Source: Botryllus schlosseri (lineage: Eukaryota). From it: a stretch of 64,000 nucleotides of DNA. The notes under the pieces are model-generated. The model searched no databases, had not been told where the DNA came from, and saw nothing but the letters and a program-made list of their open reading frames with translations. Shown in pieces: positions 3,288-40,300 of the stretch. The translations under genes and the position numbers were made by a program. Positions within the stretch are counted from its first letter, which is position 1, and each line of letters opens with the position of its first letter. The stretch is from NCBI GenBank assembly GCA_051294905.1, contig CM119382.1:21762001-21826000 (forward strand), given 5' to 3'.

Positions 3288-3691
3288 TCAGTACTTCTTC
3301 ATTGCCTCTTCGTAGACGACGTAATCGTCGTACATGACTTTCCGTAATTTAAGGACAGCTTTTTCATGAAGAAAGTCCTTGGTTTTAGTTCTTGTTTTAT
3401 TTGGCGCAGCGGAATTTTTCATTTCCTGCCAGGTTTTCACAGCCCCTCCGAAGAAATCCGAAATGATGGTTTCAAACAAGCTCAGCGTGCCTTCGATCTC
3501 TTTAGTCAGTCCTATAACTAAATAGATATCGCGAATGCGTTTCTTGGCTAGTTCCACTCGATCTGGCGAAGTCGAATCGTGGCAAACCGGATCGAATCGA
3601 CAAAAATAGTTCGTATAATATTGTGTAATAATTAAGTCGTTTCAAAACGCTTCCTCGTTCGTTACGCATTTGTTGATGTGGATCTAGCATT
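3288..3691 (-). pseudogene. 3' half of a uronyl-2-/heparan-sulfate-2-O-sulfotransferase-like (Sulfotransfer_2) pseudogene
   Basis: Minus frame reads INKCVTNEEAF*NDLIITQYYTNYFCRFDPVCHDSTSPDRVELAKKRIRDIYLVIGLTKEIEGTLSLFETIISDFF...YDDYVVY, collinear with the UST/HS2ST C-terminal half as I recall it (DINEC..YFCG.C..ALERAK..VG). In-frame TGA at 3642-3644. Runs up to the insertion point. Confidence 0.8.
3686..3691. repeat. Left target-site duplication AGCATT
   Basis: Identical hexamer at 18357-18362 directly after the right terminus. Confidence 0.95.
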
Positions 3692-4027
3692 AGTAGTATG
3701 AGTAATGGGCGATTTGCCCGCATGCACCCTATTTACTTAAACAAACAAGAATTATCAATATAATAAACAGTGAAGGAATTAGCTCATTCTCAGTTTTGCA
3801 GCAATACTGGAGGGGAATTCCCTTCTGACTGTGCGGCAATTAAAAAAGGGGGAATAATTACAGATAGAGAGAAAACGAACAAGGAATCTGGATTGACCTT
3901 TGTACTCAGACATGAGACTGGAGTACTTCTCCTTGTACTTTTCCACTCGCCTCCTGATTATAATACATTGTAATTTTACTGTATTTTTCCACGATTCACA
4001 GCTGACTTCGGTCGTACACGACGGTGA

Positions 4028-4411
4028 TCATAGTTGCCTGCCCTGACCTGTTGTTCCGTGGTCCAATTTCGTGGCTTGGGAACAATAACCCGTAAAACTG
4101 GTTGACTTGTTATTCCGCGGTTGATTCATTTTCGTGTACGGTGGGTCATAGGAATAATTGTCGGTCGTGACGTAAGTATAGTTTTCTTCTGATCTGTGAG
4201 ATCCTGGTGCGTGTTTTAGGTGTCCATACGTTCGGCAGTGTAAGGTGACGCTTGTGGTCTGTCTCATACTGTCGTACCCGCTTGCTTTGTTGTTCAGCCA
4301 GACAGTAACGAGAAATGATCTGTTATTATTATAAATATGTGTGTCATTTCGAGTCATACCGAGAATCAGAATGAATGTCCTAGTAGAAATTTGTATTAAG
4401 CGACCCGACAT
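4028..4411 (-). CDS. Hypothetical 127-aa subterminal ORF, left-arm copy
   Basis: ATG-initiated and open in both arms despite 8 substitutions and an in-frame 6-bp indel. No recognisable domain. Confidence 0.3.
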   Translation of the reverse strand: MSGRLIQISTRTFILILGMTRNDTHIYNNNRSFLVTVWLNNKASGYDSMRQTTSVTLHCRTYGHLKHAPGSHRSEENYTYVTTDNYSYDPPYTKMNQPRNNKSTSFTGYCSQATKLDHGTTGQGRQL

Positions 4412-4796
4412 AGATTAGCTTAAATAAAGTAACATTATGAATATAATAAGTAATTAAACAAATAGCTGATTCTCAATTTTGCTCGCATCAACGTGTTAAC
4501 AACCAGTATTACGTACCTAGTATTCGGTGCAAGCAACAAATGTGGCTGTTCCATACCTATACCGCGTTCTAGCGTCTTCATAAGGACAGACAGTCCCAAC
4601 CAAACAATGTATTTATGATGGGTTCTTTTACTGCTTCACGTCTGGTCAAGCGTAATCGTGCCGGTGCTTGTAAATGATATACAATTTACCGCGGCATATT
4701 ATTTTTGTATGCTGTATAATGTACACGAGGTACAACTTGAATCGATCAGTTGGCGAACTAATGCTTTACCCGTCTGTACGATCGATCGCGAGCTCA

Positions 4797-5085
4797 CCAC
4801 GCACTTGTCGGTCGAGAGCGACTCATTTCGCTATAGACAATCAGTTGTGTTCGCGTGTACCGTAACATATCCTCAACACTTGTTATGCCAACACCTCCAA
4901 GCATATTTACAATATCATGCTAAGGAACTATTGCTTCGGCAGCCACGCACTGTCGTTCGAATTCGACTAATTTCGCTGCAGACAATCAGTTGTGCTCGTG
5001 TGTGCCGTAACATATCCTCAACACATGTTATGCCAACACCGCCGAGCATATTTGCAGGATCATACTACGGATATATTGACTCGAC
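4797..5085. repeat. Diverged tandem duplication, unit about 145 bp (mirror at about 16957-17245)
   Basis: GACAATCAGTTGTG at 4836 and 4981; CGTAACATATCCTCAACAC.TGTTATGCCAACACC occurs twice. Confidence 0.85.
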
Positions 5086-5443
5086 AGAGTGTTACTATAG
5101 AAATTAAACATGGAATGGCAACGATCAATTTTGCAGCTTCGCTCCGCTTCGCCGGGGCTGGAATGAAGAATTGTTTTGCGTAAGCGACTGTAGGATTTCT
5201 GGCAACCCAAAAGCAATCTTCCCGAGCGCAGAAATTATTGAATCTGGTCTTGATCGAAAGCTACTGTTGCACCGATTCCGAAAATATAAATTAAAATATT
5301 GATCGTGTGCTGATCCACCTAGAATATGTCCTCCAAGTCTGAAATATCGGCATTGTTTAGAACAATCGGGTAACCGCAACACAATTGCCATAACAATGAC
5401 CCGTTGGGATCAGTGGGCTGACCTTATTTGGCTGAAACGCGCT

Positions 5444-5938
5444 CGGTGGTGCAATAATGACAATGAATTGTGGTAGATCATACGTTATGCGATCTATAGC
5501 CTGAGGTGAGGTGTAAAGTAGAGGGGGAGATTTCGAAATCGGAATCCACTGCGACTATAGGATTGCAAAATCAAAGTCCAAAAAATCCGACTGGCACGTA
5601 AAGTACTGGTTTCTCCATATATTAGGCTGGGTAAAATGTAACATAAATCCAACTCTCAAAGGCACTGCTGTAAGGGGAGTGTCGTTGTACATTAATTTGC
5701 GTACAGCGAAACTTTGTATGCGGTGGTGCAATAATGAGGATGAATTGTGCCAGATCACGTGATGCAATCTAGCCTGCTTTCGGTGAGGTGTAAAGATGAG
5801 CGGGGAAATTTCGAAATCTGACTCCACCCGGACTCGGGTTGCTAAATCAAAGTCCAAAAAATCCGGCTGGCTCGTAAAGTCCTGTTATTTCCACATGTTG
5901 TGAGGGTAAAATATAGCATAAATCCGACTCTCAAGGCC
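5444..5938. repeat. Diverged tandem duplication, unit about 277 bp (mirror at about 16105-16598)
   Basis: CGGTGGTGCAATAATGA at 5444 and 5721; downstream blocks GGTGAGGTGTAAAG, TTTCGAAATC and AATCAAAGTCCAAAAAATCCG recur at the same spacing. Confidence 0.85.
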
Positions 5939-7370
5939 ATTTGGCTGCATCCAGACTGGCTTCGCTGAAAACTGATGAAATCTGGGCCGGGTCCGGAGAT
6001 GTTTCGTGACCTCCTCCGGCCAGACAAGATTGTTCTGCTGTAATATAGGTGTCGTTGTATAATAATTTACGTACAAGGAGACTTGGTATCGACCCTTTGG
6101 CGGAATTCTGTTTGGTTCGTCTGTACAGGTGTTATTAGTGCGATCAGATTTGGCACCTCAAGGAGTATATTGGTAAAAATCACACAACGATGACAATAAC
6201 TTTACCGGTCAACATGCGGTCAACGGTCAACGATGCGGTGTGATGTACGTAAATCAGCTGTGATCAATCGAGCGTGACACAATCGCTGTCAGTCATCAAT
6301 CTGCGACTTGACAAAACTCGCGTTTTCGGGTTGACAGCAACACATTGCGATATATTTGATGTCCCCGTCGACCCTCCTATTTTAATAGGGTTACCATGCG
6401 GCCTCATTTAGGGGAGCATATGTCCTCCATTTCCCAGATATGTCACCCAATTCACCTAAATGTACTCTCTTTCTGTCAGTTTGTCCTCCTTGTTAGCTCA
6501 ACATTTCCAAAAAAACACCACGAGTAACGCAAAATGTGGGCCTAGATTACGAAAAGTCGGGTATTTACGTAGCCAAATCGGGAAAATGACCCTATGATGG
6601 TATTGTGCAGGCTATTACGTGGATACGTGGGCGTGTGTAAACATGTGAATAGTAAAAGCGCCCCAAACTACCGTTACATGAAAAAAGATCGAGCGCACTC
6701 GACCATGACGGGGTATACCCACCTTAGTACAGCCAAATGATCCCATGTCGTACCGGGAATAGCCGAGGTGGTGGTACATCATTCTCACAAAATGTACTTT
6801 GGAACGCGTGTGAAATCGACATCGTCCGCTACTCGACTGACGCAAGTCGCCACTGCAGTCCCTCTCTGTGTATACACAATGTGCTGAGCACTGCAGATCC
6901 AGACGAGACTACGCATTCTGGCGAGGTTATCGAGATAGCTGGAGCGATTTACAACACATGCTACATTTACTTCAAACGGAATGACAAAATATGGTTTTGG
7001 AGTACTCAAGTAGTTTTAAGGGAATGTCAGTATCGTGATATCGCTTTCTATCCTAATTATAAAAGAGTAGGTCCCCATAAAACTGTCGAGCTCAAGCACG
7101 TTGGTAACTGTGATAGTAGACAAAACTGACTCGAGTACCTCAGAAATAGTGACTGTATTTCGTTGCTGACCACGCGCCTGCTTATTCACACCGACTGACT
7201 CTCCTAGTAAGCAACTGCGCCCCCGTCATCTTCTTATTGCCCAAATAATTTTACAATTCACGAAATCCAATCTCATTTGTCGATAGTTTTATCAGCACAA
7301 AAGTCACAGTTACACAAGTCTCGTAAATAGGTGTCGATACACTACAATCGTTTTATCGCCACTATTCAAC

Positions 7371-8549
7371 TCATAGCCCGATCACACGACTGACGTTTCC
7401 GCAGATCAATTTTTGACGTTTGATCAACTCTTGCCTGGTTTTGGGGTTTCTAATCACAGGGCGATTGAGATTCGGGTGTGTCTTTTCGATACGTTGCGCA
7501 AACTCGATACCTTTCGTTCGGAGTACGTATTCACACTGCGGAAACCATTTTGCATGTTCTGTCCAAACCTCGTCTTCACGGTCCCAACGAAGCCCGCCGT
7601 CACAGTAAAAGCATTTGGTTCTGTCCGAATCAACGTAGTAAAACCCCGCTTTTGCTAACTGTTCAACACTAGCTCTAATTTTATTCGGTTCCCAGCCCTT
7701 GTCGAACGTTGCGATTCTTTTTGACAACGACGACATGAGAGGGTTCACGGGTTTAAGACAAGGAAATAGTTGCTCAAGACATCGCTTTTCGTCCTCGGAG
7801 GGTTCCTCTGGTTCTTGCAGATGTAAAGTGAGACGTCGTATTTTGTCGTCAAGCAACTTATCCAAATTGTCTCGTTCGTACTCGGTTAACGCCAAATTCC
7901 CCGAATCGTCGCCACGTGCGAAACAACAATCCGGGCGATACGTCAAGTGTATTTCAGATATATCGTCTGTAGGCCTCCAATTGCGTAGAACGCCGGAGCA
8001 TTTGAAGCACTGCGTTCTGTCCAGGTCACCGAGGTAGAATAAACCTTGTTTTGCCAACTCGCCGACCGCCCGTGGTATGGGATAGCTGGGCCATTTCTCA
8101 AAGGTTTCGCGACGCTTCGACTCCTTTCGCAAGTCGAGATTCCTAACCCGATACTCGTGCTCTTGATCAACGATATTCGCAAAGTTGATGTTGGCGTTTC
8201 CAGCGGCTTTAAACTGTCTCAGTAAACTTTTGAAATTCGATTTCACAATAGGTATGTTCAACGCGTCTCGTACACAATTCGCGTCATGACGCCGTGCACT
8301 CGACCCGGTCCATCTTTCGAGGTACGCACTGCACCCAAAGCATTTGATTTTGTCTTCAAATCCTAGCCAGTAGTATCCCTCAGACGCTAAATCGGTGCGT
8401 GTTGCGTATGATACTTTAGAGAATTTGGCGAACGTGGCGAGTCTGTATAATTCAGTGCGGTGTGAACCGGAAGCGATATACACTCGTTTCTGTCCGGGCG
8501 GATCAGAGTATCTCTCCATTGACGATATGCCAAGCTCTTTCATAAACAT
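7371..8549 (-). CDS. iap: Inhibitor of apoptosis protein, 3 BIR domains, no RING, intronless (392 aa), left-arm copy
   Basis: Three BIR repeats with zinc ligands: RLATF..GYY..KCFGC..H..C; RRETF..GLFY..QCFKC..W..H..C; RIATF..LAKAGFYY..KCFYCDGGL.W..WTEHAKWFPQC. Confidence 0.95.
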   Translation of the reverse strand: MFMKELGISSMERYSDPPGQKRVYIASGSHRTELYRLATFAKFSKVSYATRTDLASEGYYWLGFEDKIKCFGCSAYLERWTGSSARRHDANCVRDALNIPIVKSNFKSLLRQFKAAGNANINFANIVDQEHEYRVRNLDLRKESKRRETFEKWPSYPIPRAVGELAKQGLFYLGDLDRTQCFKCSGVLRNWRPTDDISEIHLTYRPDCCFARGDDSGNLALTEYERDNLDKLLDDKIRRLTLHLQEPEEPSEDEKRCLEQLFPCLKPVNPLMSSLSKRIATFDKGWEPNKIRASVEQLAKAGFYYVDSDRTKCFYCDGGLRWDREDEVWTEHAKWFPQCEYVLRTKGIEFAQRIEKTHPNLNRPVIRNPKTRQELIKRQKLICGNVSRVIGL

Positions 8550-10247
8550 GGAGTACTAAGACAGAGCTTTTTGTGTCTAAACCTGTACCATAGCTCACAC
8601 ATATATATTCCTAGTTTATCCTTGCGAGCTCTATCGATTACTGGTTGGTTGTACTTTTATGTGAGATTGACAACCGTTGGCTGTCGCTATTGCACCATTT
8701 ATATATGTGTTATACCAGGAGCGGTCAACTTCTGCAGCCCGCGGGGCGTGTATAGCATAATTAGGTACTCGGTGGTGCGAATTGCTGAATCGATACATTA
8801 TTCGACCACCGATCAGCATATGCCAGGAATAAATCGTATTCAATCAATGTATTTTAACAACAGCAATGTCAATGCAAAGCCGTATCTCGCCGATATTAAC
8901 GAGGACAAAGTGGATTTGAGAACAGTATTTTTATACAGGCACCGCCATGTCTGCTTCTCTCTCACGGTGCAATACTTAAATAAGATTTCATAGTGGTCTA
9001 TAAGCCCGATACCCTAAATTGACAGAGACATCAGTTCAATAAAGTTGTTTTCTAACGACATTACAGAGAACAACGCGTACCAGTAAACACAAACCGAATT
9101 GTCCCACTGTTGCGTCAATTCACCGCCGACTCAGTATGAGACACTCTCGACCAGCGAATGTACATTAGGCAACCGAAACACGTGACCTTGCGAAGGGGGG
9201 TGTTTTCGATAACACCGATACGGCAACTTAATTCTTTCTACTGACAATGTGATGGAGAGCGGCTTAATTCATCAGACAAAGACTGGAGGCAACAATAACT
9301 AGCAAACACAAATCTAATGGCCACACCGACATTCACAGGTATTCGATAGACCCGAAAATACCAACGTCACCCAACTGCTGTAATGACACGGGTACGATGC
9401 GGGGTACGAAGCATTTTGAACGGTGTTGCTCAGTTGCGGTTCTTGGCCTTCCAAGACCTCTGTTAGCATCAGTCTATCTCACTGTTTGGAGTACCAATGC
9501 CAAACGTCGTAATAGTGGTCACTCGGTCATGTGTAGAATATAGAAATTGACGCCTGGCCTATTTGCAAGACCTCATGGCTTTGGCAAACTTACTAAAGCG
9601 GAAATTCACAAAGTCACTTGCGTACGTGCTTTCATGCCTTTGAATGTTTGTTATCATCGAGTCTGGTCATAAATAGACATGGGGACAAATTTGATGCGTT
9701 CAGCACAATATACGTTTACCACATCTCATTCCGGACCGTAACCGATCGTTTACCGCACCCTCTATATGGCAAACGTCGCCTTTGCTCATAGGTAAGCCGA
9801 TGATCTGTGAAAACACATGCGCTAACGTGCCATTTCGTTATTCCTTCAACGTCACATGACCGCCTATGAAGGCTTTTTGGGTACCCACCAATACAGTGTT
9901 GAAACGTGATCCATAGGGACCCCACTGCGTGCTATACGCCTAAATAAATATGTTTACTCGAGTATACACCTGGTGTGGAGCAGTGAAGTGGATGCAGAAA
10001 GTAAATTAGACAACGCAAACCAGTTGACAACGTCGATTAATATACGGGGGTTGATACATTTTGTCAAGTGACTTTTGAATGAGTGTTATTTGTTTGGTGT
10101 TTGATGGATAAGATTGTATTCAATCATAAACTACTAATATACTTCTTGTGGTGCTAAACCTGATTATACAGATGAATCAGACAGTATTCCGCCAATTGGG
10201 AGTAGTTGCCCGTCGTCGTGATTGACCTTCTAGTTCGCGGTGGTAAC

Positions 10248-11795
10248 GAAGAATGTATAACAGAAAGTGTAAATCGTACAATGACGACAACTAACTGTTG
10301 TCAGTCGCCCACAACAATACAGCTAACCAGTAATCTATAGAGCTTTCACGAATAAACTAGGAGTATAAACGGTTAGTCCTAACTTGTCGTTCCACGACTG
10401 AATAATCCAATTTCATCGCGACGGGGATCGGTAGTAGTTGCCCGTACGATATAGTGAATCAATCTCAAAACCTAATGCAATCCTAATTCAGCAAAATTTC
10501 ACAAATACTTTTTTTTTTCTAAATCCTAATCAATGCTCATCTCTGGCGTATACGTACAAGTTTTGTCAAAACAACAGATTGATGGAGCGTGGCTTACATT
10601 GATTGCGACACACGATCACAGCTTCTTCTGGTGGAATTTTTCAATGGTAAATTCAAGGCTAGGTCGAGGGGGTCAAACAGCATTTCTCTCACGGTAGCAC
10701 TCCGCCGAGTCAATACGTCCATAGTATGATATTTGTCGCAAGTATGTTTTGTTGGGGGTGCTGAGGATATTTTGCGGTACGCGTTTTTTCACAGGTTGCA
10801 AGTTACGATAGGGGAAGACGTATTTTTATATTTATACCGCTAATTTCATTAGATTGACTAGAAAACAATGTCATTTCTTCTGACTCGACTACCGAAATAC
10901 CCGTCAATTACTTGTGTTGTGCGAGTTAACTAAATGAAAGGTCACTCACCGAAATCGACCAGACCTACATTTCGCGTTATTCGTGGTGTTTTTTGTTATT
11001 TTAGGCTGAAAATAGGGAAAAATTTACAAAAAAGGAAGACATTTGGGCGAAGGTTGTACATATCTAGGAGAAGGAGGAGGACTTTGGTAACCCTATAAAT
11101 ATTGATCGATGTGAACATCAGCTGTATCGCATTGCTGTCAACCCGCTCCAATATGCGAGTTTAGTCAAACAGGAGATTGACGACTGACACCGTTTGTGTC
11201 ACATTCGATTGATCACAGCTGGTTTGTGTACATCACACCCCATCGAAATTACAAGCATTCGAACGAGTGATGACCGTTAGGTTTGCTGACAGTTAAAGTT
11301 GTTATCGTTGTGAGATGGATAAGATTTTGCCAATATACTTCTTGTGGTGCTAAACCCTACTGCAATAACAACACATGTACAGACAAATCAAACAGAATCC
11401 CGCCAGTGGTTCGATACAAAGTTTCACTGTACACGCAAATGAATATGCAACGAAACCCCGCATATCGTGTAATGACAGCAGAATCATTTTGCCTGGACGG
11501 AGGTGGTCACGAATCGGTTCCGTACCCCCGAATTTCATCGGTTTTGAGTGAAATCGGACTGGATACGGCCACGTATCTTTGAGAGTCAGTCATATACTAG
11601 ATTCTGTCCTCACAATATGTCGGAATAACAGGACTTTGCGTACCAGCCTGGATTTACCCCAATTCGCAGTTCAAACAGGCTTTAGGTACACCCGATAACG
11701 CGCGTCCACCACTCCAAACACATAGTTACGGGGTATGGCGGGGACCCGGAAACTCGGGGCATAGCTTATTAGTAATTTTACGCGATCATTTTTTT
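10248..11795. other. Unique 1548-bp loop (spacer) of the palindrome, containing diverged copies of arm sequence
   Basis: Symmetry stops after GGTAAC at 10247 and resumes at GTTAC 11796. 10960-11655 resembles 15500-16185; 10255-10368 resembles 13328-13439. Confidence 0.85.
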
Positions 11796-13337
11796 GTTAC
11801 TACCGCGAACTAGAAGGTCAATCACGACGACGGGCAACTACTCCCAATTGGCGGAATACTGTCTGATTCATCTGTATAATCAGGTTTAGCACCACAAGAA
11901 GTATATTAGTAGTTTATGATTGAATACAATCTTATCCATCAAACACCAAACAAATAACACTCATTCAAAAGTCACTTGACAAAATGTATCAACCCCCGTA
12001 TATTAATCGACGTTGTCAACTGGTTTGCGTTGTCTAATTTACTTTCTGCATCCACTTCACTGCTCCACACCAGGTGTATACTCGAGTAAACATATTTATT
12101 TAGGCGTATAGCACGCAGTGGGGTCCCTATGGATCACGTTTCAACACTGTATTGGTGGGTACCCAAAAAGCCTTCATAGGCGGTCATGTGACGTTGAAGG
12201 AATAACGAAATGGCACGTTAGCGCATGTGTTTTCACAGATCATCGGCTTACCTATGAGCAAAGGCGACGTTTGCCATATAGAGGGTGCGGTAAACGATCG
12301 GTTACGGTCCGGAATGAGATGTGGTAAACGTATATTGTGCTGAACGCATCAAATTTGTCCCCATGTCTATTTATGACCAGACTCGATGATAACAAACATT
12401 CAAAGGCATGAAAGCACGTACGCAAGTGACTTTGTGAATTTCCGCTTTAGTAAGTTTGCCAAAGCCATGAGGTCTTGCAAATAGGCCAGGCGTCAATTTC
12501 TATATTCTACACATGACCGAGTGATCACTATTACGACGTTTGGCATTGGTACTCCAAACAGTGAGATAGACTGATGCTAACAGAGGTCTTGGAAGGCCAA
12601 GAACCGCAACTGAGCAACACCGTTCAAAATGCTTCGTACCCCGCATCGTACCCGTGTCATTACAGCAGTTGGGTGACGTTGGTATTTTCGGGTCTATCGA
12701 ATACCTGTGAATGTCGGTGTGGCCATTAGATTTGTGTTTGCTAGTTATTGTTGCCTCCAGTCTTTGTCTGATGAATTAAGCCGCTCTCCATCACATTGTC
12801 AGTAGAAAGAATTAAGTTGCCGTATCGGTGTTATCGAAAACACCCCCCTTCGCAAGGTCACGTGTTTCGGTTGCCTAATGTACATTCGCTGGTCGAGAGT
12901 GTCTCATACTGAGTCGGCGGTGAATTGACGCAACAGTTTGACAATTCGATTTGTGTTTACTGGTACGCGTTGTTCTCTGTAATGTCGTTAGAAAACAACT
13001 TTATTGAACTGATGTCTCTGTCAATTTAGGGTATCGGGCTTATAGACCACTATGAAATCTTATTTAAGTATTGCACCGTGAGAGAGAAGCAGACATGGCG
13101 GTGCCTGTATAAAAATACTGTTCTCAAATCCACTTTGTCCTCGTTAATATCGGCGAGATACGGCTTTGCATTGACATTGCTGTTGTTAAAATACATTGAT
13201 TGAATACGATTTATTCCTGGCATATGCTGATCGGTGGTCGAATAATGTATCGATTCAGCAATTCGCACCACCGAGTACCTAATTATGCTATACACGCCCC
13301 GCGGGCTGCAGAAGTTGACCGCTCCTGGTATAACACA

Positions 13338-13345
13338 TATATAAA
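13338..13345 (+). promoter_or_regulatory. Candidate TATA box upstream of the right-arm IAP (mirror at 8698-8705)
   Basis: TATATAAA about 150 bp upstream of the ATG at 13494; position and sequence only. Confidence 0.3.
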
Positions 13346-13493
13346 TGGTGCAATAGCGACAGCCAACGGTTGTCAATCTCACATAAAAGTACAACCAACC
13401 AGTAATCGATAGAGCTCGCAAGGATAAACTAGGAATATATATGTGTGAGCTATGGTACAGGTTTAGACACAAAAAGCTCTGTCTTAGTACTCC

Positions 13494-14672
13494 ATGTTTA
13501 TGAAAGAGCTTGGCATATCGTCAATGGAGAGATACTCTGATCCGCCCGGACAGAAACGAGTGTATATCGCTTCCGGTTCACACCGCACTGAATTATACAG
13601 ACTCGCCACGTTCGCCAAATTCTCTAAAGTATCATACGCAACACGCACCGATTTAGCGTCTGAGGGATACTACTGGCTAGGATTTGAAGACAAAATCAAA
13701 TGCTTTGGGTGCAGTGCGTACCTCGAAAGATGGACCGGGTCGAGTGCACGGCGTCATGACGCGAATTGTGTACGAGACGCGTTGAACATACCTATTGTGA
13801 AATCGAATTTCAAAAGTTTACTGAGACAGTTTAAAGCCGCTGGAAACGCCAACATCAACTTTGCGAATATCGTTGATCAAGAGCACGAGTATCGGGTTAG
13901 GAATCTCGACTTGCGAAAGGAGTCGAAGCGTCGCGAAACCTTTGAGAAATGGCCCAGCTATCCCATACCACGGGCGGTCGGCGAGTTGGCAAAACAAGGT
14001 TTATTCTACCTCGGTGACCTGGACAGAACGCAGTGCTTCAAATGCTCCGGCGTTCTACGCAATTGGAGGCCTACAGACGATATATCTGAAATACACTTGA
14101 CGTATCGCCCGGATTGTTGTTTCGCACGTGGCGACGATTCGGGGAATTTGGCGTTAACCGAGTACGAACGAGACAATTTGGATAAGTTGCTTGACGACAA
14201 AATACGACGCCTCACTTTACATCTGCAAGAACCAGAGGAACCCTCCGAGGACGAAAAGCGATGTCTTGAGCAACTATTTCCTTGTCTTAAACCCGTGAAC
14301 CCTCTCATGTCGTCGTTGTCAAAAAGAATCGCAACGTTCGACAAGGGCTGGGAACCGAATAAAATTAGAGCTAGTGTTGAACAGTTAGCAAAAGCGGGGT
14401 TTTACTACGTTGATTCGGACAGAACCAAATGCTTTTACTGTGACGGCGGGCTTCGTTGGGACCGTGAAGACGAGGTTTGGACAGAACATGCAAAATGGTT
14501 TCCGCAGTGTGAATACGTACTCCGAACGAAAGGTATCGAGTTTGCGCAACGTATCGAAAAGACACACCCGAATCTCAATCGCCCTGTGATTAGAAACCCC
14601 ATAACCAGGCAAGAGTTGATCAAACGTCAAAAATTGATCTGCGGAAACGTCAGTCGTGTGATCGGGCTATGA
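13494..14672 (+). CDS. iap: Inhibitor of apoptosis protein, 3 BIR domains, no RING, intronless (392 aa), right-arm copy
   Basis: Same ORF as 7371-8549. Two differences found: 14602 (Lys/Ile) and 14210 (synonymous Arg). Confidence 0.95.
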   Translation: MFMKELGISSMERYSDPPGQKRVYIASGSHRTELYRLATFAKFSKVSYATRTDLASEGYYWLGFEDKIKCFGCSAYLERWTGSSARRHDANCVRDALNIPIVKSNFKSLLRQFKAAGNANINFANIVDQEHEYRVRNLDLRKESKRRETFEKWPSYPIPRAVGELAKQGLFYLGDLDRTQCFKCSGVLRNWRPTDDISEIHLTYRPDCCFARGDDSGNLALTEYERDNLDKLLDDKIRRLTLHLQEPEEPSEDEKRCLEQLFPCLKPVNPLMSSLSKRIATFDKGWEPNKIRASVEQLAKAGFYYVDSDRTKCFYCDGGLRWDREDEVWTEHAKWFPQCEYVLRTKGIEFAQRIEKTHPNLNRPVIRNPITRQELIKRQKLICGNVSRVIGL

Positions 14673-17630
14673 GTTGAATAGTGGCGATAAAACGATTGTA
14701 GTGTATCGACACCTATTTACGAGACTTGTGTAACTGTGACTTTTGTGCTGATAAAACTATCGACAAATGAGATTGGATTTCGTGAATTGTAAAATTATTT
14801 GGGCAATAAGAAGATGACGGGGGCGCAGTTGCTTACTAGGAGAGTCAGTCGGTGTGAATAAGCAGGCGCGTGGTCAGCAACGAAATACAGTCACTATCTC
14901 TGAGGTACTCGAGTCAGTTTTGTCTACTATCACAGTTACCAACGTGCTTGAGCTCGACAGTTTTATGGGGACCTACTCTTTTATAATTAGGATAGAAAGC
15001 GATATCACGATACTGACATTCCCTTAAAACTACTTGAGTACTCCAAAACCATATTTTGTCATTCCGTTTGAAGTAAATGTAGCATGTGTTGTAAATCGCT
15101 CCAGCTATCTCGATAACCTCGCCAGAATGCGTAGTCTCGTCTGGATCTGCAGTGCTCAGCACATTGTGTATACACAGAGAGGGACTGCAGTGGCGACTTG
15201 CGTCAGTCGAGTAGCGGACGATGTCGATTTCACACGCGTTCCAAAGTACATTTTGTGAGAATGATGTACCACCACCTCGGCTATTCCCGGTACGACATGG
15301 GATCATTTGGCTGTACTAAGGTGGGTATACCCCGTCATGGTCGAGTGCGCTCGATCTTTTTTCATGTAACGGTAGTTTGGGGCGCTTTTACTATTCACAT
15401 GTTTACACACGCCCACGTATCCACGTAATAGCCTGCACAATACCATCATAGGGTCATTTTTCCGATTTGGCTACGTAAATACCCGACTTTTCGTAATCTA
15501 GGCCCACATTTTGCGTTACTCGTGGTGTTTTTTTGGAAATGTTGAGCTAACAAGGAGGACAAACTGACAGAAAGAGAGTACATTTAGGTGAATTGGGTGA
15601 CATATCTGGGAAATGGAGGACATATGCTCCCCTAAATGAGGCCGCATGGTAACCCTATTAAAATAGGAGGGTCGACGGGGACATCAAATATATCGCACTG
15701 TGTTGCTGTCAACCCGAAAACGCGAGTTTTGTCAAGTCGCAGATTGATGACTGACAGCGATTGTGTCACGCTCGATTGATCACAGCTGATTTACGTACAT
15801 CACACCGCATCGTTGACCGTTGACCGCATGTTGACCGGTAAAGTTATTGTCATCGTTGTGTGATTTTTACCAATATACTCCTTGAGGTGCCAAATCTGAT
15901 CGCACTAATAACACCTGTACAGACGAACCAAACAGAATTCCGCCAAAGGGTCGATACCAAGTCTCCTTGTACGTAAATTATTATACAACGACACCTATAT
16001 TACAGCAGAACAATCTTGTCTGGCCGGAGGAGGTCACGAAACATCTCCGGACCCGGCCCAGATTTCATCAGTTTTCAGCGAAGCCAGTCTGGATGCAGCC
16101 AAATGGCCTTGAGAGTCGGATTTATGCTATATTTTACCCTCACAACATGTGGAAATAACAGGACTTTACGAGCCAGCCGGATTTTTTGGACTTTGATTTA
16201 GCAACCCGAGTCCGGGTGGAGTCAGATTTCGAAATCTCCCCGCTCATCTTTACACCTCACCGAAAGCAGGCTAGATTGCATCACGTGATCTGGCACAATT
16301 CATCCTCATTATTGCACCACCGCATACAAAGTTTCGCTGTACGCAAATTAATGTACAACGACACTCCCCTTACAGCAGTGCCTTTGAGAGTTGGATTTAT
16401 GTTACATTTTACCCAGCCTAATATATGGAGAAACCAGTACTTTACGTGCCAGTCGGATTTTTGGTCTTTGATTTTGCAATCCTATAGTCGCAGTGGATTC
16501 CGATTTCGAAATCTCCCCCTCTACTTTACACCTCACCTCAGGCTATAGATCGCATAACGTATGATCTACCACAATTCATTGTCATTATTGCACCACCGAG
16601 CGCGTTTCAGCCAAATAAGGTCAGCCCACTGATCCCAACGGGTCATTGTTATGGCAATTGTGTTGCGGTTACCCGATTGTTCTAAACAATGCCGATATTT
16701 CAGACTTGGAGGACATATTCTAGGTGGATCAGCACACGATCAATATTTTAATTTATATTTTCGGAATCGGTGCAACAGTAGCTTTCGATCAAGACCAGAT
16801 TCAATAATTTCTGCGCTCGGGAAGATTGCTTTTGGGTTGCCAGAAATCCTACAGTCGCTTACGCAAAACAATTCTTCATTCCAGCCCCGGCGAAGCGGAG
16901 CGAAGCTGCAAAATTGATCGTTGCCATTCCATGTTTAATTTCTATAGTAACACTCTGTCGAGTCAATATATCCGTAGTATGATCCTGCAGATATGCTCGG
17001 CGGTGTTGGCATAACATGTGTTGAGGATATGTTACGGCACACACGAGCACAACTGATTGTCTGCAGCGAAATTAGTCGAATTCGAACGACAGTGCGTGGC
17101 TGCCGAAGCAATAGTTCCTTAGCATGATATTGTAAATATGCTTGGAGGTGTTGGCATAACAAGTGTTAAGGATATGTTACAGTACACGCGAACACAACTG
17201 ATTGTCTATAGCGAAATGAGTCGCTCTCGACCGACAAGTGCGTGGTGAGCTCGCGATCGATCGTACAGACGGGTAAAGCATTAGTTCGCCAACTGATCGA
17301 TTCAAGTTGTACCTCGTGTACATTATACAGCATACAAAAATAATATGCCGCGGTAAATTGTATATCATTTACAAGCACCGGCACGATTACGCTTGACCAG
17401 ACGTGAAGCAGTAAAAGAACCCATCATAAATACATTGTTTGGTTGGGACTGTCTGTCCTTATGAAGACGCTAGAACGCGGTATAGGTATGGAACAGCCAC
17501 ATTTGTTGCTTGCACCGAATACTAGGTACGTAATACTGGGGGTTAACACGTTGATGCGAGCAAAATTGAGAATCAGCTATTTGTTTAATTACTTATTATA
17601 TTCATAATGTTACTTTATTTAAGCTAATCT

Positions 17631-18020
17631 ATGTCGGGTCGCTTGATACAAATTTCTACTAGGACATTCATTCTGATTCTCGGTATGACTCGAAATGACA
17701 CACATATTTATAATAATAACAGATCATTTCTCGTTACTGTCTGGTTTGACAACAAAGCAAGCGGGTTCAAGTACGACAGTATGAGACAGACCACAAGCGT
17801 CACCTTGCACAGCCGAACGTATGGACACCTAAAACACGCACCAGGATCTCACAGATCAGAAGAAAACTATACTTACGTCACGACCGACAATTATTCCTAT
17901 GACCCACCGTACACGAAAATGAATCAACCGCGGAACAACAAGTCAACCAGTTTTACGGGTTATTGTTCCCAAGCCACGAAATTGGACCACGGAACAACAG
18001 GTCAGGGCAAGCAACTATGA
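17631..18020 (+). CDS. Hypothetical 129-aa subterminal ORF, right-arm copy
   Basis: Mirror of 4028-4411 with two extra codons (TTC AAG). No recognisable domain. Confidence 0.3.
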   Translation: MSGRLIQISTRTFILILGMTRNDTHIYNNNRSFLVTVWFDNKASGFKYDSMRQTTSVTLHSRTYGHLKHAPGSHRSEENYTYVTTDNYSYDPPYTKMNQPRNNKSTSFTGYCSQATKLDHGTTGQGKQL

Positions 18021-18356
18021 TCACCGTCGTGTACGACCGAAGTCAGCTGTGAATCGTGGAAAAATACAGTAAAATTACAATGTATTATAATCAGGAGGCG
18101 AGTGGAAAAGTACAAGGAGAAGTACTCCAGTCTCATGTCTGAGTACAAAGGTCAATCCAGATTCTTTGTTCGTTTTCTCTCTATCTGTAATTATTCCCCC
18201 TTTTTTAATTGCCGCACAGTCAGAAGGGAATTCCCCTCCAGTATTGCTGCAAAACTGAGAATGAGCTAATTCCTTCACTGTTTATTATATTGATAATTTT
18301 TGTTTGTTTAAGTAAATAGGGTGCATGCGGGCAAATCGCCCATTACTCATACTACT

Positions 18357-18362
18357 AGCATT
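18357..18362. repeat. Right target-site duplication AGCATT
   Basis: Identical to 3686-3691. Confidence 0.95.
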
Positions 18363-18804: not shown

Positions 18805-19752
18805 CAGTGCTGGGATGACTCGAGTCATGACTTGACTCGAGTCAGACTCGAGTTACCTTTTTTGTATGACTTGACTTGACTCGAGTCAATTTGCTAAAAT
18901 GACTTGACTTGACTTGACTCGGCGTATCAGAAATGTCGATTGATTCGTGACTCGGAGTAAAATTGAAGAGTCAATTTCAAGTCATCAAGTAATCGGTGTG
19001 GACAAAAATTACCCAATCTTGTATATGTTCGGATTGTTCGCGGAACGCTGGTGTAACCCGTGATATCGACCAATCATTCAATGATCGTGCGTTTTACTGA
19101 GCCTCCATTGTTCTCTCTCAAATAAATTGACAGCAAACGAAGTGATCGAAGCTACAGTGTACATTGTCGTAAACTAGTATAGTAAAGTAATTTGAGAGCA
19201 AAATGTCTATTTCTGTTCTCTGTTCTTACCTTAACCAAGCCTTTTGTTTTATTGAAATAGAATTCGAATATAGTTTTTGAAGTCCTCAACCATTAGCACA
19301 GCTCGAATTGCATCATATTAGTTTGTAAATGGGTAATGAATTGCAACTATTAACAACTGGTAACTATAAACTGATGAGGCTATGAAATTACTTACGTAGC
19401 TCCGCAGTTCTAGGTAAATGTGAGCGATACAGCGCCTTCTTACGTGTATAATAAACTCTATATTCGTTCATCGGTTCAAAATCAATGACCACCCAATCTG
19501 TATTTCCGACAGCTAGCAAAATGCAATGACGTAATCATGCCTCAGACTTCAAAAAGGCAACTTGACTTGAATTGTGACTTGACTCTTGACTTGACTTGAC
19601 TCGACGTGACTCGAGTAACCTTCAAAAATCGAGTGACTTGACTCGACTCGAGTCACCTTCAAAAATCGATTGACTTGACTTGACTCGAGTCAAAATTTGC
19701 AATGACTCGAAATGACTCGTGATTCGAAAGTAGTGACTTGATCCCATCACTG
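18805..19752. mobile_element. hAT-type MITE, family A (GACTTGACTCGAGTC subterminal arrays)
   Basis: TIR CAGTGCTGGGAT...ATCCCATCACTG; exact 8-bp TSD GTACAATA. Confidence 0.92.
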
Positions 19753-20470
19753 GTACAATATACATTGTACCTCGTTAGGTGACCGCTCTATGCGAAGGAA
19801 AGCGGTATATATAGGTTGTGGGTATCCGACAATGAAAGTAAAACGGGAATCAAACAGTAAGAAAGCCTTATCTTGCCGGATGGTTACGTGTATATTGATA
19901 ATAACAGCTCATATCTAATTTCACCATTTCTCCTGAATCAGTTAAAAACGGAATATCTGCGTGAAAAGCATATTTAGGCAAAGTTAAAACCAAACTATAT
20001 TTAATATTTTCCGATTTATTTGATATGATAGTGACAGTAAACATACAAAAGTTTAATTAGTCTGCCGATATGAATTAATAAATTGATTCGCTATGAATGT
20101 TACTATATCAGAAAATTCGTTTCGCGTCTGTGACTAATAAATCTAACAGACTAAGGGGTGTAAGTAACGGGTTAGATGAAAGTTACTGCCAGGGGGGAGA
20201 GAAAATCCTTTATTGAATCAACATCGATTATGGAGGTTTTTTGAAATATATACAGCTGTTTTCAAATCTTCCTCGCGTCCCGCGCGATTCAATGTCCATA
20301 AATGTTTTGATTTAAACAGGGACACCTATCCTCTAAGAAAAAATAAGGCAAAATTCATGGAGATAGGTATATAATCGCCGTTCATTTCGACGCCACAACA
20401 TCAATACATGTGAAGTGTGCGCAGACGCGCAACTCCACGAAGTGCGTTGCCGAAAATCGTGGCCGAATAG

Positions 20471-21032
20471 GATCGCCGCATGATGACCGAAGCCGTCGAT
20501 GTACAGGCGTCCAATTGTCTTTTGTCCACGGGGTGCCTAAATAACATGCGCCGAATATTACTGTCCTTACAATTTGCACCCAACAGGACAAATGTTAAGC
20601 ACCCGCAGAGAAAAATTATGCCTATCGTGAAAAATGCCGGAAGAAGTTTTTCTTTCAGCTTTGTCCGTGCGATTTGGCGATTCCAATATCTTTTTTATAT
20701 ATAGCAGACGGGGAAGCCAGGACAAAAAAGCATACAACAAAGTTATTTTTAACGATCGCCGCATGAAGACCGAAGCCGTCGATGTATAGGCGTCCAATTG
20801 TCGTTTGTCCACGGGTTGCCTGAATTACGGGCGCCGAATATTTCTGTCCTTACAATCTGAACCCTACAGGACAAATGTTAAGTACTCGCAGATAAAAATT
20901 ATGCCCATCGTGAAAAAAGCCGGAGGAAGCTTTTCTTTCAGCTGTGTCCGTGCGATTTGGCGATTCCAATATATTTTGGATATAGCAGACGGGGAAGCCA
21001 GGACAAAACATCATACAACAAAGTTATTTTTG
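20471..21032. repeat. Tandem duplication, 2 x about 283 bp; diverged relative at about 38060-38280
   Basis: GATCGCCGCATGA.GACCGAAGCCGTCGATGTA at 20471 and 20754, collinear through both units. Confidence 0.85.
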
Positions 21033-21319
21033 ACCACGGCCCGACCAATGCTGTAGAGTTGGGATCGCGAAAACGCGGCCTGCACAAAAAGAAAAACGCG
21101 AAGTGAAGCATTTTGTTATGCTGAAATTGATTTCACGTTCACATTATTCTTGTTGCTGTTTAAAAATAAGTTATTCACCTGTTCAAACATCCCTATTCCT
21201 CATTAGCAGAAATGGCCCAGGCGATCGCAGTGGCAGTCCATCGAGGAAGAATCTGCTGATATGATTGGGCACTGGGCAGATGGCCTTAATCATTACAAAG
21301 CGCTTTGAAGCATTGGGCG

Positions 21320-34300: not shown

Positions 34301-37300
34301 GCGGATCGGAAGCCGCAGTTTGCCCACCTCTTGCATATAGGCGAAGGCAATATCTCCGAAGATTTGTAACAATACCAAATATGAATGGATCAAGTAGACA
34401 TATGGATGGTTATTTAGGTACCGCAGCTGGCTTTTCTCACACGGATATCAATCAGTCCGAGGTAGACTTCGGCAACTATAGATAATTCTAGTTGTATAAT
34501 TAGACGAACTTACAGCGAAACGCTAGTAATCTGATTCTAATCTACTTTGTGAAATGTTTCAATTTCATTTTAATTCTAATCCAATTTCTCGTTTTCCTGA
34601 AAACGATACAGGAAAACTGTATAGCGTGAAACGACCCAAGCTTGGTGTACTGACATTTGTCATTGTCATACCTCGTGATAAAGAACTCTGATTTGATATA
34701 AATTGAAGACGATTTTTGTTGTTTAGAGTATTAGCGAATGTAGTAATACTAAATCTAATTCTTATGTATAGAAAAGATGTGTAGCTCTAATTGTAATTCC
34801 AATCTAATTAGGAAAAGCTAAAAAATGTCCAATTGTTCAACCCTTGTCCAAGGGATATGTGAAGGATATGTAGCGGTATGGATTTGGATTACAGATTTAA
34901 CCGTTACTTGGGTTTGCGATTAGCGTTAGAAGATATGGTCAATTATGGAGTTGATAGTGTCAAGTTTCATAAAATGTGGCGGATTCAGCTAAAATGTTAA
35001 ATTGATGGGGGTCACGTTTGCGGTGCTCACGGTCACACTTATAATAGAGGTGAAACTCTGACTATTTGCTAAATCCCAAGAAGCACCATATTTAATTATT
35101 TGCCAAGAAATCATGCCACTTAAAAGGTCTAAAGGTGTAGTACACATAATAATGGTGCGTACATACGAAACAATTTCCAATACAAAGTGGGGGGAGGGGC
35201 TCAGCAGCAAGGCGGAGTTTCAAAATAGCTTGATTAGGATACATCGTATTTTATCTCTGTTTGCACATTTATAAATCAGAAGTACATAATTATATTTTTG
35301 AGTGTTTCTTATTATCTATGAAGTAATTATATGCAATAATTCAAACTCCGACTCGAACAATGCGGTGTACTACGTCTTGATTCACGAGAACGCTCGTAGA
35401 TCATTTACCAATACCTGCCATTTGTGGGATGACGGTTGTCATTCGGCATTCAATAGCACCCCGTTGTGAAATTATTAATGTATAGAGTTAGATTAATGAT
35501 TGGATAATCTCATTATAATTAAATAGATCCTCACCACTTGGACGGTTACCGCATGTACAGCAGCTTCCTAGCGCAACTGAACAACGAATCGGTGGTGGAG
35601 TATAACTCCTTTCGAAATTCATGGAAGACGAACTTTCTGCGGTTGAAACGACTTGTCTTGGTGGGTGGACCAGATGATGGAGTGATCACGCCATGGCAAA
35701 GTTCGCAATTTGGTGCTTTTGACTCTGATGAAAACGTCGTTCCCATGAGAAACTTACAGGTATTGCATCAAAACTTATTTTAATAGCATCGATATCGTAG
35801 TCTTTTCGAAATTAACTTGATATGTAGTGACTTGATTAAACTATGTAGCCTACGTCTGCGCGAGTGCGTACATTAATAAAATGTTTATTTTTTTAGAATA
35901 CACCCGCGTGTACGTCAAATGTGTTAGATGTAAAACTACTCCTTGATTTATTTCATATTTTTTGAAGTAGAGGCTAGTGTTTGGGCAGATTCCTATCACT
36001 ATTGTGATAGAAATTATCATAACAGACCGGCGATGCTGCCAAAGTATCACCAGCACCGTAACTGCCGCACCCCAAACCCCCAAATTGGGAGGGGCCCGAG
36101 CTCGAAGGGGGCCCAAATTTTTTTCGTGAATTAGGATAAATCATAGAGAATTTTTTGAAAATTTATGCAATTTTTTCAAAAATTTTTCGCGCAGGGCGCG
36201 AATTCATGTATAGCTATTAGGGTTGTCCATAATTTGGAAAATCTCACAAATGCTGCGTATCCATGTCTCATTCTATAGATTATTGATAAAAAAACGTCAA
36301 TGAGCCTGCAATAAGCTCACAGGAAAGTCGTTAAGATTTGTCTAAATGCGTTTGAAAGTGGCTGCCACAGAGTGGGCGTGGCTGCCACAGAGTGGGCGTG
36401 CCAGCGACCATAGAACGGCGAGAAGACTAGTAATCACGAAATTCCGTCTCATGATTGGTTAATCAGTTATGCTTGAATGATCGCGACCGCAGCAACTTGC
36501 TGATTACGTGCTTCTACTCTTCAAAGAAGTTTGCTAACGGCGATGATTCTGTAAGGGCATTGTAGGTTGGTGACTTAACAATAATATGTGACACCTGGTG
36601 ATTTAATGTTTTAGTTTAAAAGTCGGTTACGATAGGTTTATAGCAGCAATAGCCTATTGCAGACATGGCCGAGGTGTAACAGCGAATAATTGTGAACTTG
36701 TAGAAGTGAGTATAAATCCCAGAAGCATCTAGTCTAATATGCTTGCGATTACGCCGAGTCCTCCTGCTTCCTGGGTGCAGGTAAAGTATTAGCCATCGCC
36801 AAACTGGTGCAGCACAGCATGTGAGACGGATGCTGCGGGGCACAATCCTGTATGCTTATAAGATGATATGTGGACCGACCAGGTAGCTTACATTGGAACT
36901 CTGAAGAAGTGTAACTACCGCATCGATTAAATGCATTTATATATCCATGTCTGGTTTGATTCAAACATTAGTCGTGATGCAGCCAGTGATGATCCATGAT
37001 TCATTTAGGAGAGGCTAAGCTCTTCAAGCAAACTGGAGTTTTGCTGACCCTACCAGCATAGCCTGTGCTTACCTATAGATCTCTTTCTGTGGTATGATTG
37101 AGAACTTTGACAGCACTTACGGGTAGATTCATTATGCTGTTAGAATCGGACAGGTGCCACGCATAAACGGACGATTCAGCCCATCCTTAGAGCATTCAAG
37201 ACCTAAATTATATACCACGACCAGAGCCTAATAAGATCAGACAAAGTATGATCACTGTTAAGATTTATATTTGAAATCAGTGATGGTACATCCCTTCTGA

Positions 37301-40300
37301 AACTAGAAATTAGTACGCTGCTTGCATAAGTGCCATTGCAATGTTTCTTCGTGTGTTTCAGTGCTTTCCCTCGATGAAAGCAAGGTACACAGACTACAAC
37401 GGTTACCTTCACAATAAGCCAGTCATGTTTCAAACGTTTTTGTGAAGTAGCTATCTCTTGTTCGTTCTGTAGTATGTTACTAAACATATCCCGAATCAAT
37501 CTCAAATCATCATCTGCGGACCAAGCTACAATGCGCTTACAGATTCACCGCCGTTAGAAGACTCCTCGAACAGCTGATCAGCAAGCCGTCACCGTCGTAA
37601 TCATTCAGGCATAGCCGCTTACCCAATCAAGCGCCGTGATTTCATGATTACTAGTCTTCTCGCCGTTCTATGGTCGCTGGTACGCCCACTCTGTGGCAGC
37701 CACTTTCAAACGCATTCAGACAAATCTTAACGACTTTCCTGTGAGCTTATTGCAGGCTCATCGACGTTTTTTTATCAATAATCTATAGAATGAGAAATGG
37801 ATACGCAGGATTTGTGAGATTTTCCAAATTATGGACAACCCTAATAGCCATGTATCTTCATTTTTGGGTACTGGGCCATTACCGCGCCACGACTCACCAA
37901 GACATACAATCAAGTTTTAGGCCATATAACATGCGACTCCAAGAAGTCTGCCAGAACGATCGGCATCGAGAAAACCTTGGCCGAAAGGGTCTATGCCCTT
38001 ATGCTGACCAAAGACTTCGTTATATATACAAAATACATACAGTTTTAATTGTCCATAGGCGCCTAAATGACTGGCGCCGAATGTTCCTGTCTTTGCAATC
38101 TGAACCTCACAAGACAAATACCATCCCGCCGGGAAAAATTTATGCCAGTGAAGAAATACCAATTTGAAATCGTGTGCGTTTCTTAGTTTAGAAGCCTACG
38201 TTTGGGCGATTCTATATTTTTTGATATAGCAGACTGGAAGTTACGAAATAACATCATGTAACGAAGTCATATCAACGTTCAACGGGTCCGCCCGCCCGAA
38301 GATGCTTAATTATTATTTACGGGCCCTCCCGTTTTCAAGACACTTCACTCAGCTCTACCGATAAATCTAATTACGTGAGCAGAGAGGACAATAAATTGAT
38401 AGCATAATATATATGCAATCGCCGATCTGATTGACCGATTTTATCATAAATTATCGGAAATTTTCGCGCTTGGCGCTGGCTCACAATACAGTAAAAATGA
38501 TTTCGTGACAAACGCGAACAACGTGATGGAGGGGTCGTTTGATCACCCTGTGGGAGCCCAAGGCCCACGTTTTTGGGGGCCTGACGAGGTGCTGTTTCGT
38601 TCCTACCAACGAGTATAGGCCCGAAGATGTTTAATTATTATTGAGTGGTCCTACCTTTTCAAACACACCTCACTCAGCTCTACCGGCAAATCTGATTACG
38701 TGAGCAGAGAGAAGATAAAAATTGATGATAATATATATGCAATTCCTGATCATACTGACCGATTCAGTCATTAATTGTAGAAATTTCCCGCGCTTCGCGC
38801 GCTTAGGCGACAAAAGCTGATTCCCTACACAAACTCCCAACGCATATCATAAATAGCGGTAAACAGGGCATCGGCGGAGGGTGGTCTGGGGCGCGAAGCC
38901 CCCAGAAGTTCGGTCTATATTCCTATGGGGGCCCACGACCAAAGTTTTTTTGGGGGGCTGGCGAAGTGCTGTTACGACCCTGGGTATCACGATATCAAGG
39001 TAATAGTGTGAAAGCTGCATACATTTACACAAGGGGTCGCCAACTCAAAACGGGTCGAGAGCCACTTTTCAAAATTCGTAGAGGCCGCGGCCGAATGACT
39101 TCAGTATCAAGATAAAAAATAGGCAACGCAGTATAACAACCACGTATTGATAACTGTATACGTCAGTACAACGCTGTGCTCTCTAACGTGAGCGACGGGC
39201 ATAGTTACTACCAAAGAAATAATATTTCATTTAGGAAACACAAACACAACAAAAATATCATGATCATCACTTCCATTCCATTTTGAACTATGAGCTGCGC
39301 ACGATACCTGACAACACTCTTCGGCAACTAAAGCATAGGGGTGGCCAGCCATTTTTCTATTCACAGCCGCATGTCAATTATTTATGTATAGTCGTAATGA
39401 ACTAACTGGAGGCCAAGTATCCACTTTGAACTGTCCATGTCCATTGCCGGTAAACTCCGGACTGATCTATTTAGTCATATCGGCTTAATATGCGCACCGA
39501 TATCGTCAGTAGTCATGTTTTGAATAGCCACAGGGATTGGCTTTATGGACGCGCTAAGCGCGAAAATTTTGTGATACTCACGAGTGAATTTCGTTATTGA
39601 TATTAGTATAGTTTCACATATTACTATCAAATATTTATGCTTTTTCGTCCCATGTGATCAGATTCACCGGTAGAGTTGATGTAGGGATTGCGGTCTTCGA
39701 AAATTTAGGGAATTTATTAATGCTGCTGTGCATCTTTTTGGTGGGACAATTGTTATTAGCCTCATTTATTGCATGCTGTCATTTCTTGACCTCCCATCAG
39801 GATTGTCGCTAGGTATAGTGGGAACATATTGGATTCACCCAAACGTAGGCCTACCAGAAACAAATTTTCTTCGTGATGAGGAGAACACGATTACAAATTG
39901 GTGTTTCTTTATGGGGCACATCATTTTCCTCTGCTGTTCGCATCTGTACTGTAGGGCTCGGATTACAAAGGACACTACCATATCAAATAGAAAATCAACT
40001 CGCATTGAACAGCGCTTAGCACGAAGAAAACTTTAACAATAATTCAAACATCTGATGAAATAGGGAGCCAAATCAAAAATTGAAGTTGCATATTGACGGC
40101 CGCCAACACATCCTAGTCGAAATAAATGACGACGGCCGCTAAATTTTCATTCTACTGCCGGAGATTGGCCACCCCTGGACCAAAGAATCGATATGGGGTA
40201 AGCTAGGGTGAGGGATAGTGATATTAGACATAGGAAAATAGCTTACTTTGAACAACAACAAAAATACGTTTAAACTGAAATCAATTTCAGCGTTTTAAAA

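Follow-up and report, generated by a model that had tools for sequence, protein, structure and literature searches.

What kind of element has the ends, the target site duplication and the length of a Maverick (Polinton) transposon when almost nine-tenths of it is its own mirror image? The question is raised by a 64-kb stretch of the Botryllus schlosseri genome (assembly GCA_051294905.1, contig CM119382.1, forward-strand positions 21,762,001 to 21,826,000; hereafter the window, numbered from its first letter), in which an element of 14,665 bp occupies positions 3692-18356 and consists of two inverted arms and a central loop. We consider it likely that this is a non-autonomous insertion bearing Maverick ends, and the locus as a whole is probably best explained as a Maverick derivative in which one cargo-bearing end was inversely duplicated and which was inserted by a Maverick-type integrase. 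What is new in it is the expansion of the terminal inverted repeats (TIRs) to 89% of the element, the complete loss of the core genes at near-unit length, and the presence of a duplicated, intronless gene for an inhibitor of apoptosis protein (IAP) as the sole gene.

Architecture, ends and target site

The arms lie at 3692-10253 on the forward strand (6,562 bp) and at 11790-18356 on the reverse strand (6,567 bp) and together make up 89.5% of the element, while the loop between them (10254-11789; 1,536 bp) is non-coding and has no Pfam match in its six-frame pieces. The inverted repeat was returned by the repeat search as three collinear segments (3691-4277/17771-18357, 4276-5584/16458-17766 and 5581-10253/11790-16462), and comparison of the element with itself by BLASTN gave a single alignment of 6,562-6,568 columns that was 99.45-99.48% identical and contained 27-29 mismatches and 2 gaps. 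The differences between the arms amount to 29 scattered events, comprising 27 substitutions and 2 indels. A preliminary description of this stretch, made from its letters, had proposed such a self-comparison, and the palindrome was confirmed by it, with arms of 6.56 kb. The window contains 0 Ns, and the GC content of the arms is 42-45%, compared to 41% in the flanks.

The element starts with AGTAGTATGAG and ends with CTCATACTACT, so that its termini, the left motif (AGT)2 at 3692-3697 and the right motif (ACT)2 at 18351-18356, both given on the forward strand, read AGTAGT and ACTACT and have the form AG..CT. It is bordered by an exact 6-bp target site duplication (TSD), AGCATT, which can be read directly on the left (3686-3691) and on the right (18357-18362). 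By chance, an exact 6-bp repeat would adjoin the element with a probability of about 1/4096, and a further factor of 1/4096 applies to AGTAGT at the boundary. The terminal 18-mer matches twice in the window, at the two ends of the element (0.03 matches expected), and nowhere else in the 64 kb, even when 3 mismatches are allowed. The termini, the TSD and the share of about 89% for the arms had all been pointed out in the preliminary description, and each was found again by direct reading, repeat search and BLASTN.

These features can be set beside those of vertebrate Mavericks, which show conserved terminal motifs of 6 bp (most commonly 5'-(AGT)2//(ACT)2-3', with (AG)3//(CT)3 as another) and perfect 6-bp TSDs, a size of 12.7-24.6 kb (mean 16.9 ± 1.7 kb) and TIRs of 46-1,447 bp, and in which accessory regions flank two core modules and genome size is constrained to about 10% (PMC8097293). 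The Botryllus element has the same (AGT)2//(ACT)2 ends, a perfect 6-bp TSD, inverted termini, and, with 14,665 bp, a length within the Maverick range, which bears out the earlier statements that its ends are of the Maverick type and its length near normal for a Polinton. Polintons are also present in another ascidian, Ciona (PMC4028283).

Absence of core genes

We searched for protein domains with six-frame Pfam scans, which covered pieces of at least 50 aa in the arm and loop and of at least 75 aa in the rest of the window. No match to pPolB (DNA_pol_B_2 or any polymerase), to an rve integrase, or to a capsid, ATPase or protease domain was obtained in the element or in the rest of the window, and there was no transposase or reverse-transcriptase domain anywhere in the 64 kb; Rfam likewise gave nothing in the window. 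The 57 pieces of at least 50 aa from the arm and loop produced just four matches, all at chance level (E>=0.028). Within the element Pfam thus found nothing credible except the BIR domains of the IAP; Pfam may lack a model of the Maverick capsid, yet no long open reading frame (ORF) is left unexplained. The IAP ORF is the only long one in the element, and the remaining ORFs are about as numerous and as long as expected by chance, with sequences that are not protein-like. The profile search proposed in the preliminary description therefore agrees with its statement that no Polinton core genes are present.

Since every gene by which a Maverick is recognized is missing, the element is not an autonomous Maverick, and since its ends, TSD and size are those of the family while the genes are absent, we class it as a non-autonomous derivative. 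To this extent, on the strength of the ends, the TSD, the size and the missing core, the preliminary description is supported; its further proposals of a MITE-like or satellite class of Polintons and of integration in trans were drawn from a single locus and do not have the same standing. On the simplest reading, the arm would correspond to a Maverick-type parent's TIR plus the accessory or cargo region close to that end, with the core of the parent gone. Non-autonomous Polintons exist in Repbase, so that the term non-autonomous alone describes nothing new. In the literature that we covered, to which Repbase and Kapitonov and Jurka 2006 did not belong, no palindromic, foldback or snap-back Maverick is described, and, again with Repbase outside the coverage, no defined family of core-less Mavericks except in a superseded view of Tlr1.

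The IAP gene

Each arm carries one copy of the IAP gene, an intact, intronless ORF of 392 aa, at 7371-8549 on the reverse strand in the left arm and at 13494-14672 on the forward strand in the right arm, so that both copies read outward, from the loop side toward the respective terminus. They differ at 2 nucleotides, one of these changes being synonymous and one non-synonymous. In the protein, Pfam identified BIR in three stretches (E=1.1e-46), of which the second alone has the strict C-x2-C-x16-H-x6-C spacing; spacers are shortened in the other two. A RING domain was detected neither by Pfam, which gave no zf-C3HC4_3 match in the protein, nor as a hidden exon by TBLASTN with 140 C-terminal residues from each of five ascidian IAPs as queries, which found nothing past the linker in the element even at E<=10.

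Among 5.8 billion proteins, the closest relatives were ascidian IAPs, led by those of Styela clava (40-46% identity) and followed by those of Ciona, Clavelina and Phallusia; IAP-like proteins from Endozoicomonas, bacteria associated with ascidians, ranked next, ahead of vertebrate BIRC2. A neighbour-joining tree, which carries no support values, placed the element IAP beside the Styela group, within the ascidian IAPs. These ascidian relatives are 574-675 aa long and have a C-terminal RING. The Styela IAP gene (P0001) spans 6.6 kb and has at least seven exon blocks in its aligning part, whereas residues 53-476 of its product are matched by one uninterrupted ORF in the element; two Ciona IAP genes are likewise split, and the host IAPs of Styela and Ciona have 5-7 or more exon blocks. 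There is no similarity between the element and the Styela locus at the DNA level, and the exact IAP ORF is absent from the contig collection. Since a single ORF in the element corresponds to multi-exon genes in its relatives, the element IAP is, to judge by its sequence, a processed, virus-style copy of an IAP of the ascidian lineage that lacks the E3-ligase domain. The preliminary description had suggested a host-modulating cargo, and this is plausible, as adintoviruses, the animal Mavericks, carry IAP and Bcl2 homologues, so that an IAP with three BIR domains is of a kind reported among their accessory genes (PMC8502044).

We also considered whether IAP homologues elsewhere lie in a Maverick context. 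The Styela locus and two Ciona loci (P0006 and P0014) were rejected, being multi-exon host genes among host genes, as was a further homologue (P0008), which sits on a bacterial contig.

Two observations concern IAP genes outside the element. In Styela clava OZ123512.1 (L001:10001-23707), two IAP genes encoding 574 aa and 249 aa, both with BIR and RING, stand tail to tail, pointing to a local IAP duplication in a stolidobranch ascidian. On a bacterial contig (ENA ERZ22157276 ctg6441l; L002:6636-8624), an intronless gene for a 662-aa IAP with BIR and RING is flanked by TonB-receptor and ABC-transporter genes. Its product is similar to IAP-like "RING-HC finger proteins" found in Endozoicomonas ascidiicola, and the proteins P0010 and P0093 belong to the same observation; symbionts of ascidians thus appear to have taken up IAPs of the ascidian type.

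Arm divergence, internal repeats and the loop

The differences between the arms are unevenly spread. The outer part of the arm (3692-5580, 1,889 bp) contains 18 of the events and the inner part (5581-10253, 4,673 bp) 11 (p=0.0002 with events unmerged), or 13 and 10 when neighbouring events are merged (p=0.005), and there are 9 events in the first kb of the arm compared to 1-3 per kb further inward. Decay of CpG was rejected as the cause of this gradient, since the observed/expected ratio of CpG is 1.15-1.19 throughout and few of the differences are in CpG, and so was selection on the IAP gene, since the inner non-coding DNA is as similar between the arms as the ORF. Two explanations remain: either gene conversion between the arms is more effective nearer the centre, or an older TIR accounts for the outer 1.9 kb or less, to which the inner mirror image was added later, possibly in place after integration.

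Repeats within the arm comprise a 145-bp tandem repeat of about 2 copies at 4797-5087 (mirrored at 16955-17236), seen by TRF, the repeat search and BLASTN, and a direct repeat at 5444-5934 whose period is about 277 bp and whose two copies were 80% identical in a BLASTN comparison of the arm with itself. BLASTN of the loop against the arm revealed two further relationships. Loop positions 10255-10367 are a 78%-identical copy of arm positions 8604-8715 (reverse strand), which lie 55-166 bp upstream of the IAP start codon and form a possible promoter region, and loop positions 10961-11655 are a 70%-identical copy of arm positions 5859-6543. Both loop copies are in the orientation of the right arm, and they are 594 bp apart, compared to 2,061 bp for the corresponding segments in the arm, where alone the IAP ORF stands between them. 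The loop is a mosaic of such old copies and retains an older, IAP-less paralogue of part of the arm unit, which may date from before the capture of the gene.

Origin of the element

The element keeps what would be the cis signals of its family. Terminal repeats of its (AGT)2//(ACT)2 kind are believed to function in protein-primed initiation, through sliding or jumping back, and its ends are those that an rve-type integrase would join while generating a 6-bp TSD. Because such ends and a 6-bp TSD are products of that enzyme family, an integrase of the rve type would have been supplied in trans, and the element would have been inserted as a unit by the Maverick-type (rve) integrase of another element. 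We propose, tentatively, that the mirror image arose by template switching of the snap-back type, by analogy with defective genomes: a strand-displacing polymerase that had started at one end would have left its template and copied back along the nascent or displaced strand to the end from which it came, leaving a molecule with the same origin at both termini, that is, a snap-back defective genome. Being of near-unit length (14.7 kb), it may then have been able to pass a step that limits size, for instance packaging. If expressed, the two outward-reading, BIR-only IAPs could bind caspases or IAP antagonists without self-ubiquitylation and so damp caspase-dependent death, which would favour the survival of the carrying or infected cell. 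The full scenario, in which a defective genome of a Maverick or adintovirus arose by snap-back at near-unit length, was both carried and integrated by a helper and became endogenised as this element, is possible but on balance doubtful. A further possibility, again by analogy, is that read-through of the 6.5-kb arms could provide a source of hairpin RNA directed against related Mavericks.

Several observations weigh against descent from a Maverick by one duplication of a cargo-bearing end. The outer 1,889 bp of the arms have diverged about four times as much as the inner 4,673 bp (0.95% vs 0.24%), and this excess toward the ends is not what one snap-back event with uniform decay afterwards would predict; the 70-78% copies of arm segments in the loop point to more than one rearrangement of the region; about 1 kb of sequence downstream of the IAP stop codon contains neither a poly(A) tract nor a canonical AATAAA as a footprint of retroposition; and the coding density of the arm is low (1.2 kb of 6.56 kb), unlike that of a virus-like genome. 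The link to Mavericks consists of six terminal bases at either end, the length of the TSD, the size and the type of cargo. Moreover, one copy was seen, with no relative, helper or empty site in the window or in the viral and metagenome collections: BLASTN against the remainder of the window turned up no further copy, and the terminal 18-mer and 20-mer had 0 matches in viral_contigs and metagenome_contigs. Part of this evidence favours an alternative history, in which an ordinary Maverick-type element with TIRs of about 1.9 kb or less was inserted first and acquired its inner mirror image only afterwards, within the chromosome, either because a break inside the element was repaired by foldback or break-induced replication with the other arm as template, or because the TIRs spread inward through gene conversion between the arms; either route would delete the middle of the element. 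The contrast in divergence, the equal similarity of inner ORF and inner non-coding DNA, which leaves selection as no explanation, and the older rearrangements of the same sequences in the loop all fit this course of events, and foldback-primed inverted duplication is known from chromosomal repair (PMC10622511). However, two events would be needed, together with the loss of all core genes from exactly between the duplicated parts, and gene conversion acting on an initially complete palindrome could give the gradient as well, and we regard later formation in place as unlikely.

The junctions also count to some degree against a Maverick origin, because they can be parsed in another way. The outermost bases of the TSD are complementary, which makes the inverted repeat one base longer (3691/18357), and since the TSD begins with A and ends with T, the same letters also allow a 4-bp TSD, GCAT, next to ends of the form TAG...CTA. 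The element could then belong to another superfamily with such ends, or be of the Foldback type, its likeness to Mavericks being coincidental, and its long, mostly non-coding arms with tandem repeats recall the Foldback/Galileo-type elements (PMC3573991). Against this, published work gives the combination of exact (AGT)2/(ACT)2 hexamers and a perfect 6-bp repeat as diagnostic of Mavericks, neither the element nor the window contains any kind of transposase domain, and repeats fill just a small part of the arms. FB/P-type elements, furthermore, have TSDs of 7-9 bp, and we give a coincidental likeness very little credence. An assembly artefact must also be weighed, in which a read that was chimeric or folded back, or the wrong joining of two copies, created a palindrome that does not exist. 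Long-read assembly is known to fail by producing large near-perfect palindromes, and our assessment was made from the assembled sequence, not from reads. Several features nonetheless argue for a real structure: the palindrome is bounded by exact transposon-type termini and a matching TSD on two different, unique flanks, which a mis-join of two insertions would not yield; the 27 substitutions and 2 indels that separate the arms argue against a missed adapter or a collapsed assembly; and the turn is a unique loop of 1.5 kb, not one of zero length. An artefact is thus highly improbable, and a Maverick derivative with one cargo-bearing end inversely duplicated remains our preferred account of the locus.

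Surrounding sequence

The flanks are ordinary animal DNA with ascidian host genes. They include a galactosyltransferase exon (664-1308), the best named relatives of which are in Ciona savignyi and Clavelina, as well as EGF/Sushi/ephrin-receptor-like exons and a palmitoyl thioesterase fragment; the best match of a flanking host gene is 53-54% identical. Other repeats are also present in the window. A dispersed repeat of about 950 bp occurs in three copies with 66-92% identity (18805-19755, 42457-43381 and 46532-47411), begins with a short GACTCGAGTCA-type tandem, and has its first copy 449 bp to the right of the element; it probably represents an unrelated family of short non-autonomous transposons. 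A small foldback-like element at 36210-37851 has inverted arms of about 295 nt (in segments that are 95% and 84% identical) with about 1.1 kb between them, and its ends are unlike AGTAGT. Local tandem duplications, each of two copies with 77-90% identity, lie at 20471-21041 (period about 283 bp) and 38294-38800 (about 325 bp).

Significance

Protein priming and movement in virus-like particles have been inferred for Mavericks/Polintons, and neither has been directly observed. A core-less, near-unit-length mirror image with Maverick ends and a TSD is the product to be expected of an end-initiated, strand-displacing polymerase that turns back, and such an element implies that an integrase, and probably also a polymerase and a capsid, were supplied in trans. 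Were it an endogenised defective genome, it would be a germline trace of Maverick replication, a mechanism that has so far only been modelled, and would define a helper-dependent satellite form of Maverick with two IAP copies as its only cargo. If more copies and a matching helper exist, the locus would point to helper-dependent parasitism within Mavericks in animals, would supply a structural argument for the replication model, and would be evidence that a processed anti-apoptotic host gene can spread at twice the dose in the absence of virus genes. Should the element prove unique, it would nevertheless be a clean example of the extent to which TIRs can expand in Mavericks and of IAP capture in tunicates, the sister group of vertebrates.

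Comparison with known systems

As in Mavericks, the accessory or cargo gene of the element lies near the ends, and IAP homologues are among the accessory genes already known (PMC8502044). In contrast to Mavericks, the element has no pPolB, integrase, ATPase, protease or capsid genes, 89% of it is inverted repeat, and its coding density is low. Its arms of 6.56 kb are about 4.5 times as long as the longest reported Maverick TIR (1,447 bp; 100-1,500 bp in a nematode survey). Nematode Mavericks have a cargo region of 2-5 kb adjoining one TIR (bioRxiv 2022.07.12.499685), and the element resembles them in combining cargo of differing GC content (here 42-45% in the arms against 41% in the flanks) with a host-derived gene, here an IAP of the host lineage. 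They differ, however, in keeping the full core, short TIRs and intron-bearing cargo, whereas the element has no core, a mirrored cargo end and an intronless cargo.

Other transposons resemble the element in part. In Foldback/Galileo-type transposons inverted arms also dominate, tandem repeats lie within the arms, and most copies are non-autonomous. Their ends and TSD length are different, however, and whereas Foldback arms consist mainly of short tandem repeats, the arms of the element are mostly unique sequence with a gene, the repeats amounting to two 2-copy repeats (145 and 277 bp) in 6.56 kb; no link to a P- or MuDR-type transposase was found for the element. The IS3EU/GingerRoot group, eukaryotic transposons that also make 6-bp TSDs, have ends that for the most part read TA..TA and sometimes TG..CA (PMC10045372), unlike the AG..CT ends of the element. 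The inverted duplication of an end could give a long hairpin RNA upon read-through in the element, a likeness to Mu killer that is a functional analogy only. Mu killer-type loci of maize are themselves an inverted duplication of a transposon end.

Snap-back, or long-inverted-repeat, defective genomes of linear dsDNA viruses with protein priming resemble the element in having one end mirrored, the same origin at both termini and the essential genes lost, and dependence on a helper is expected of them as it is of the element. Daniell and Mullenbach reportedly described adenovirus defective DNA with long inverted terminal repetitions in 1978 (cited in PMC13506859). As a general class, snap-back defective genomes also include copy-back forms of RNA (PMC13506859). 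Such defective viral genomes are extrachromosomal and come from infected cells, whereas the Botryllus element is integrated in the germline and flanked by a TSD.

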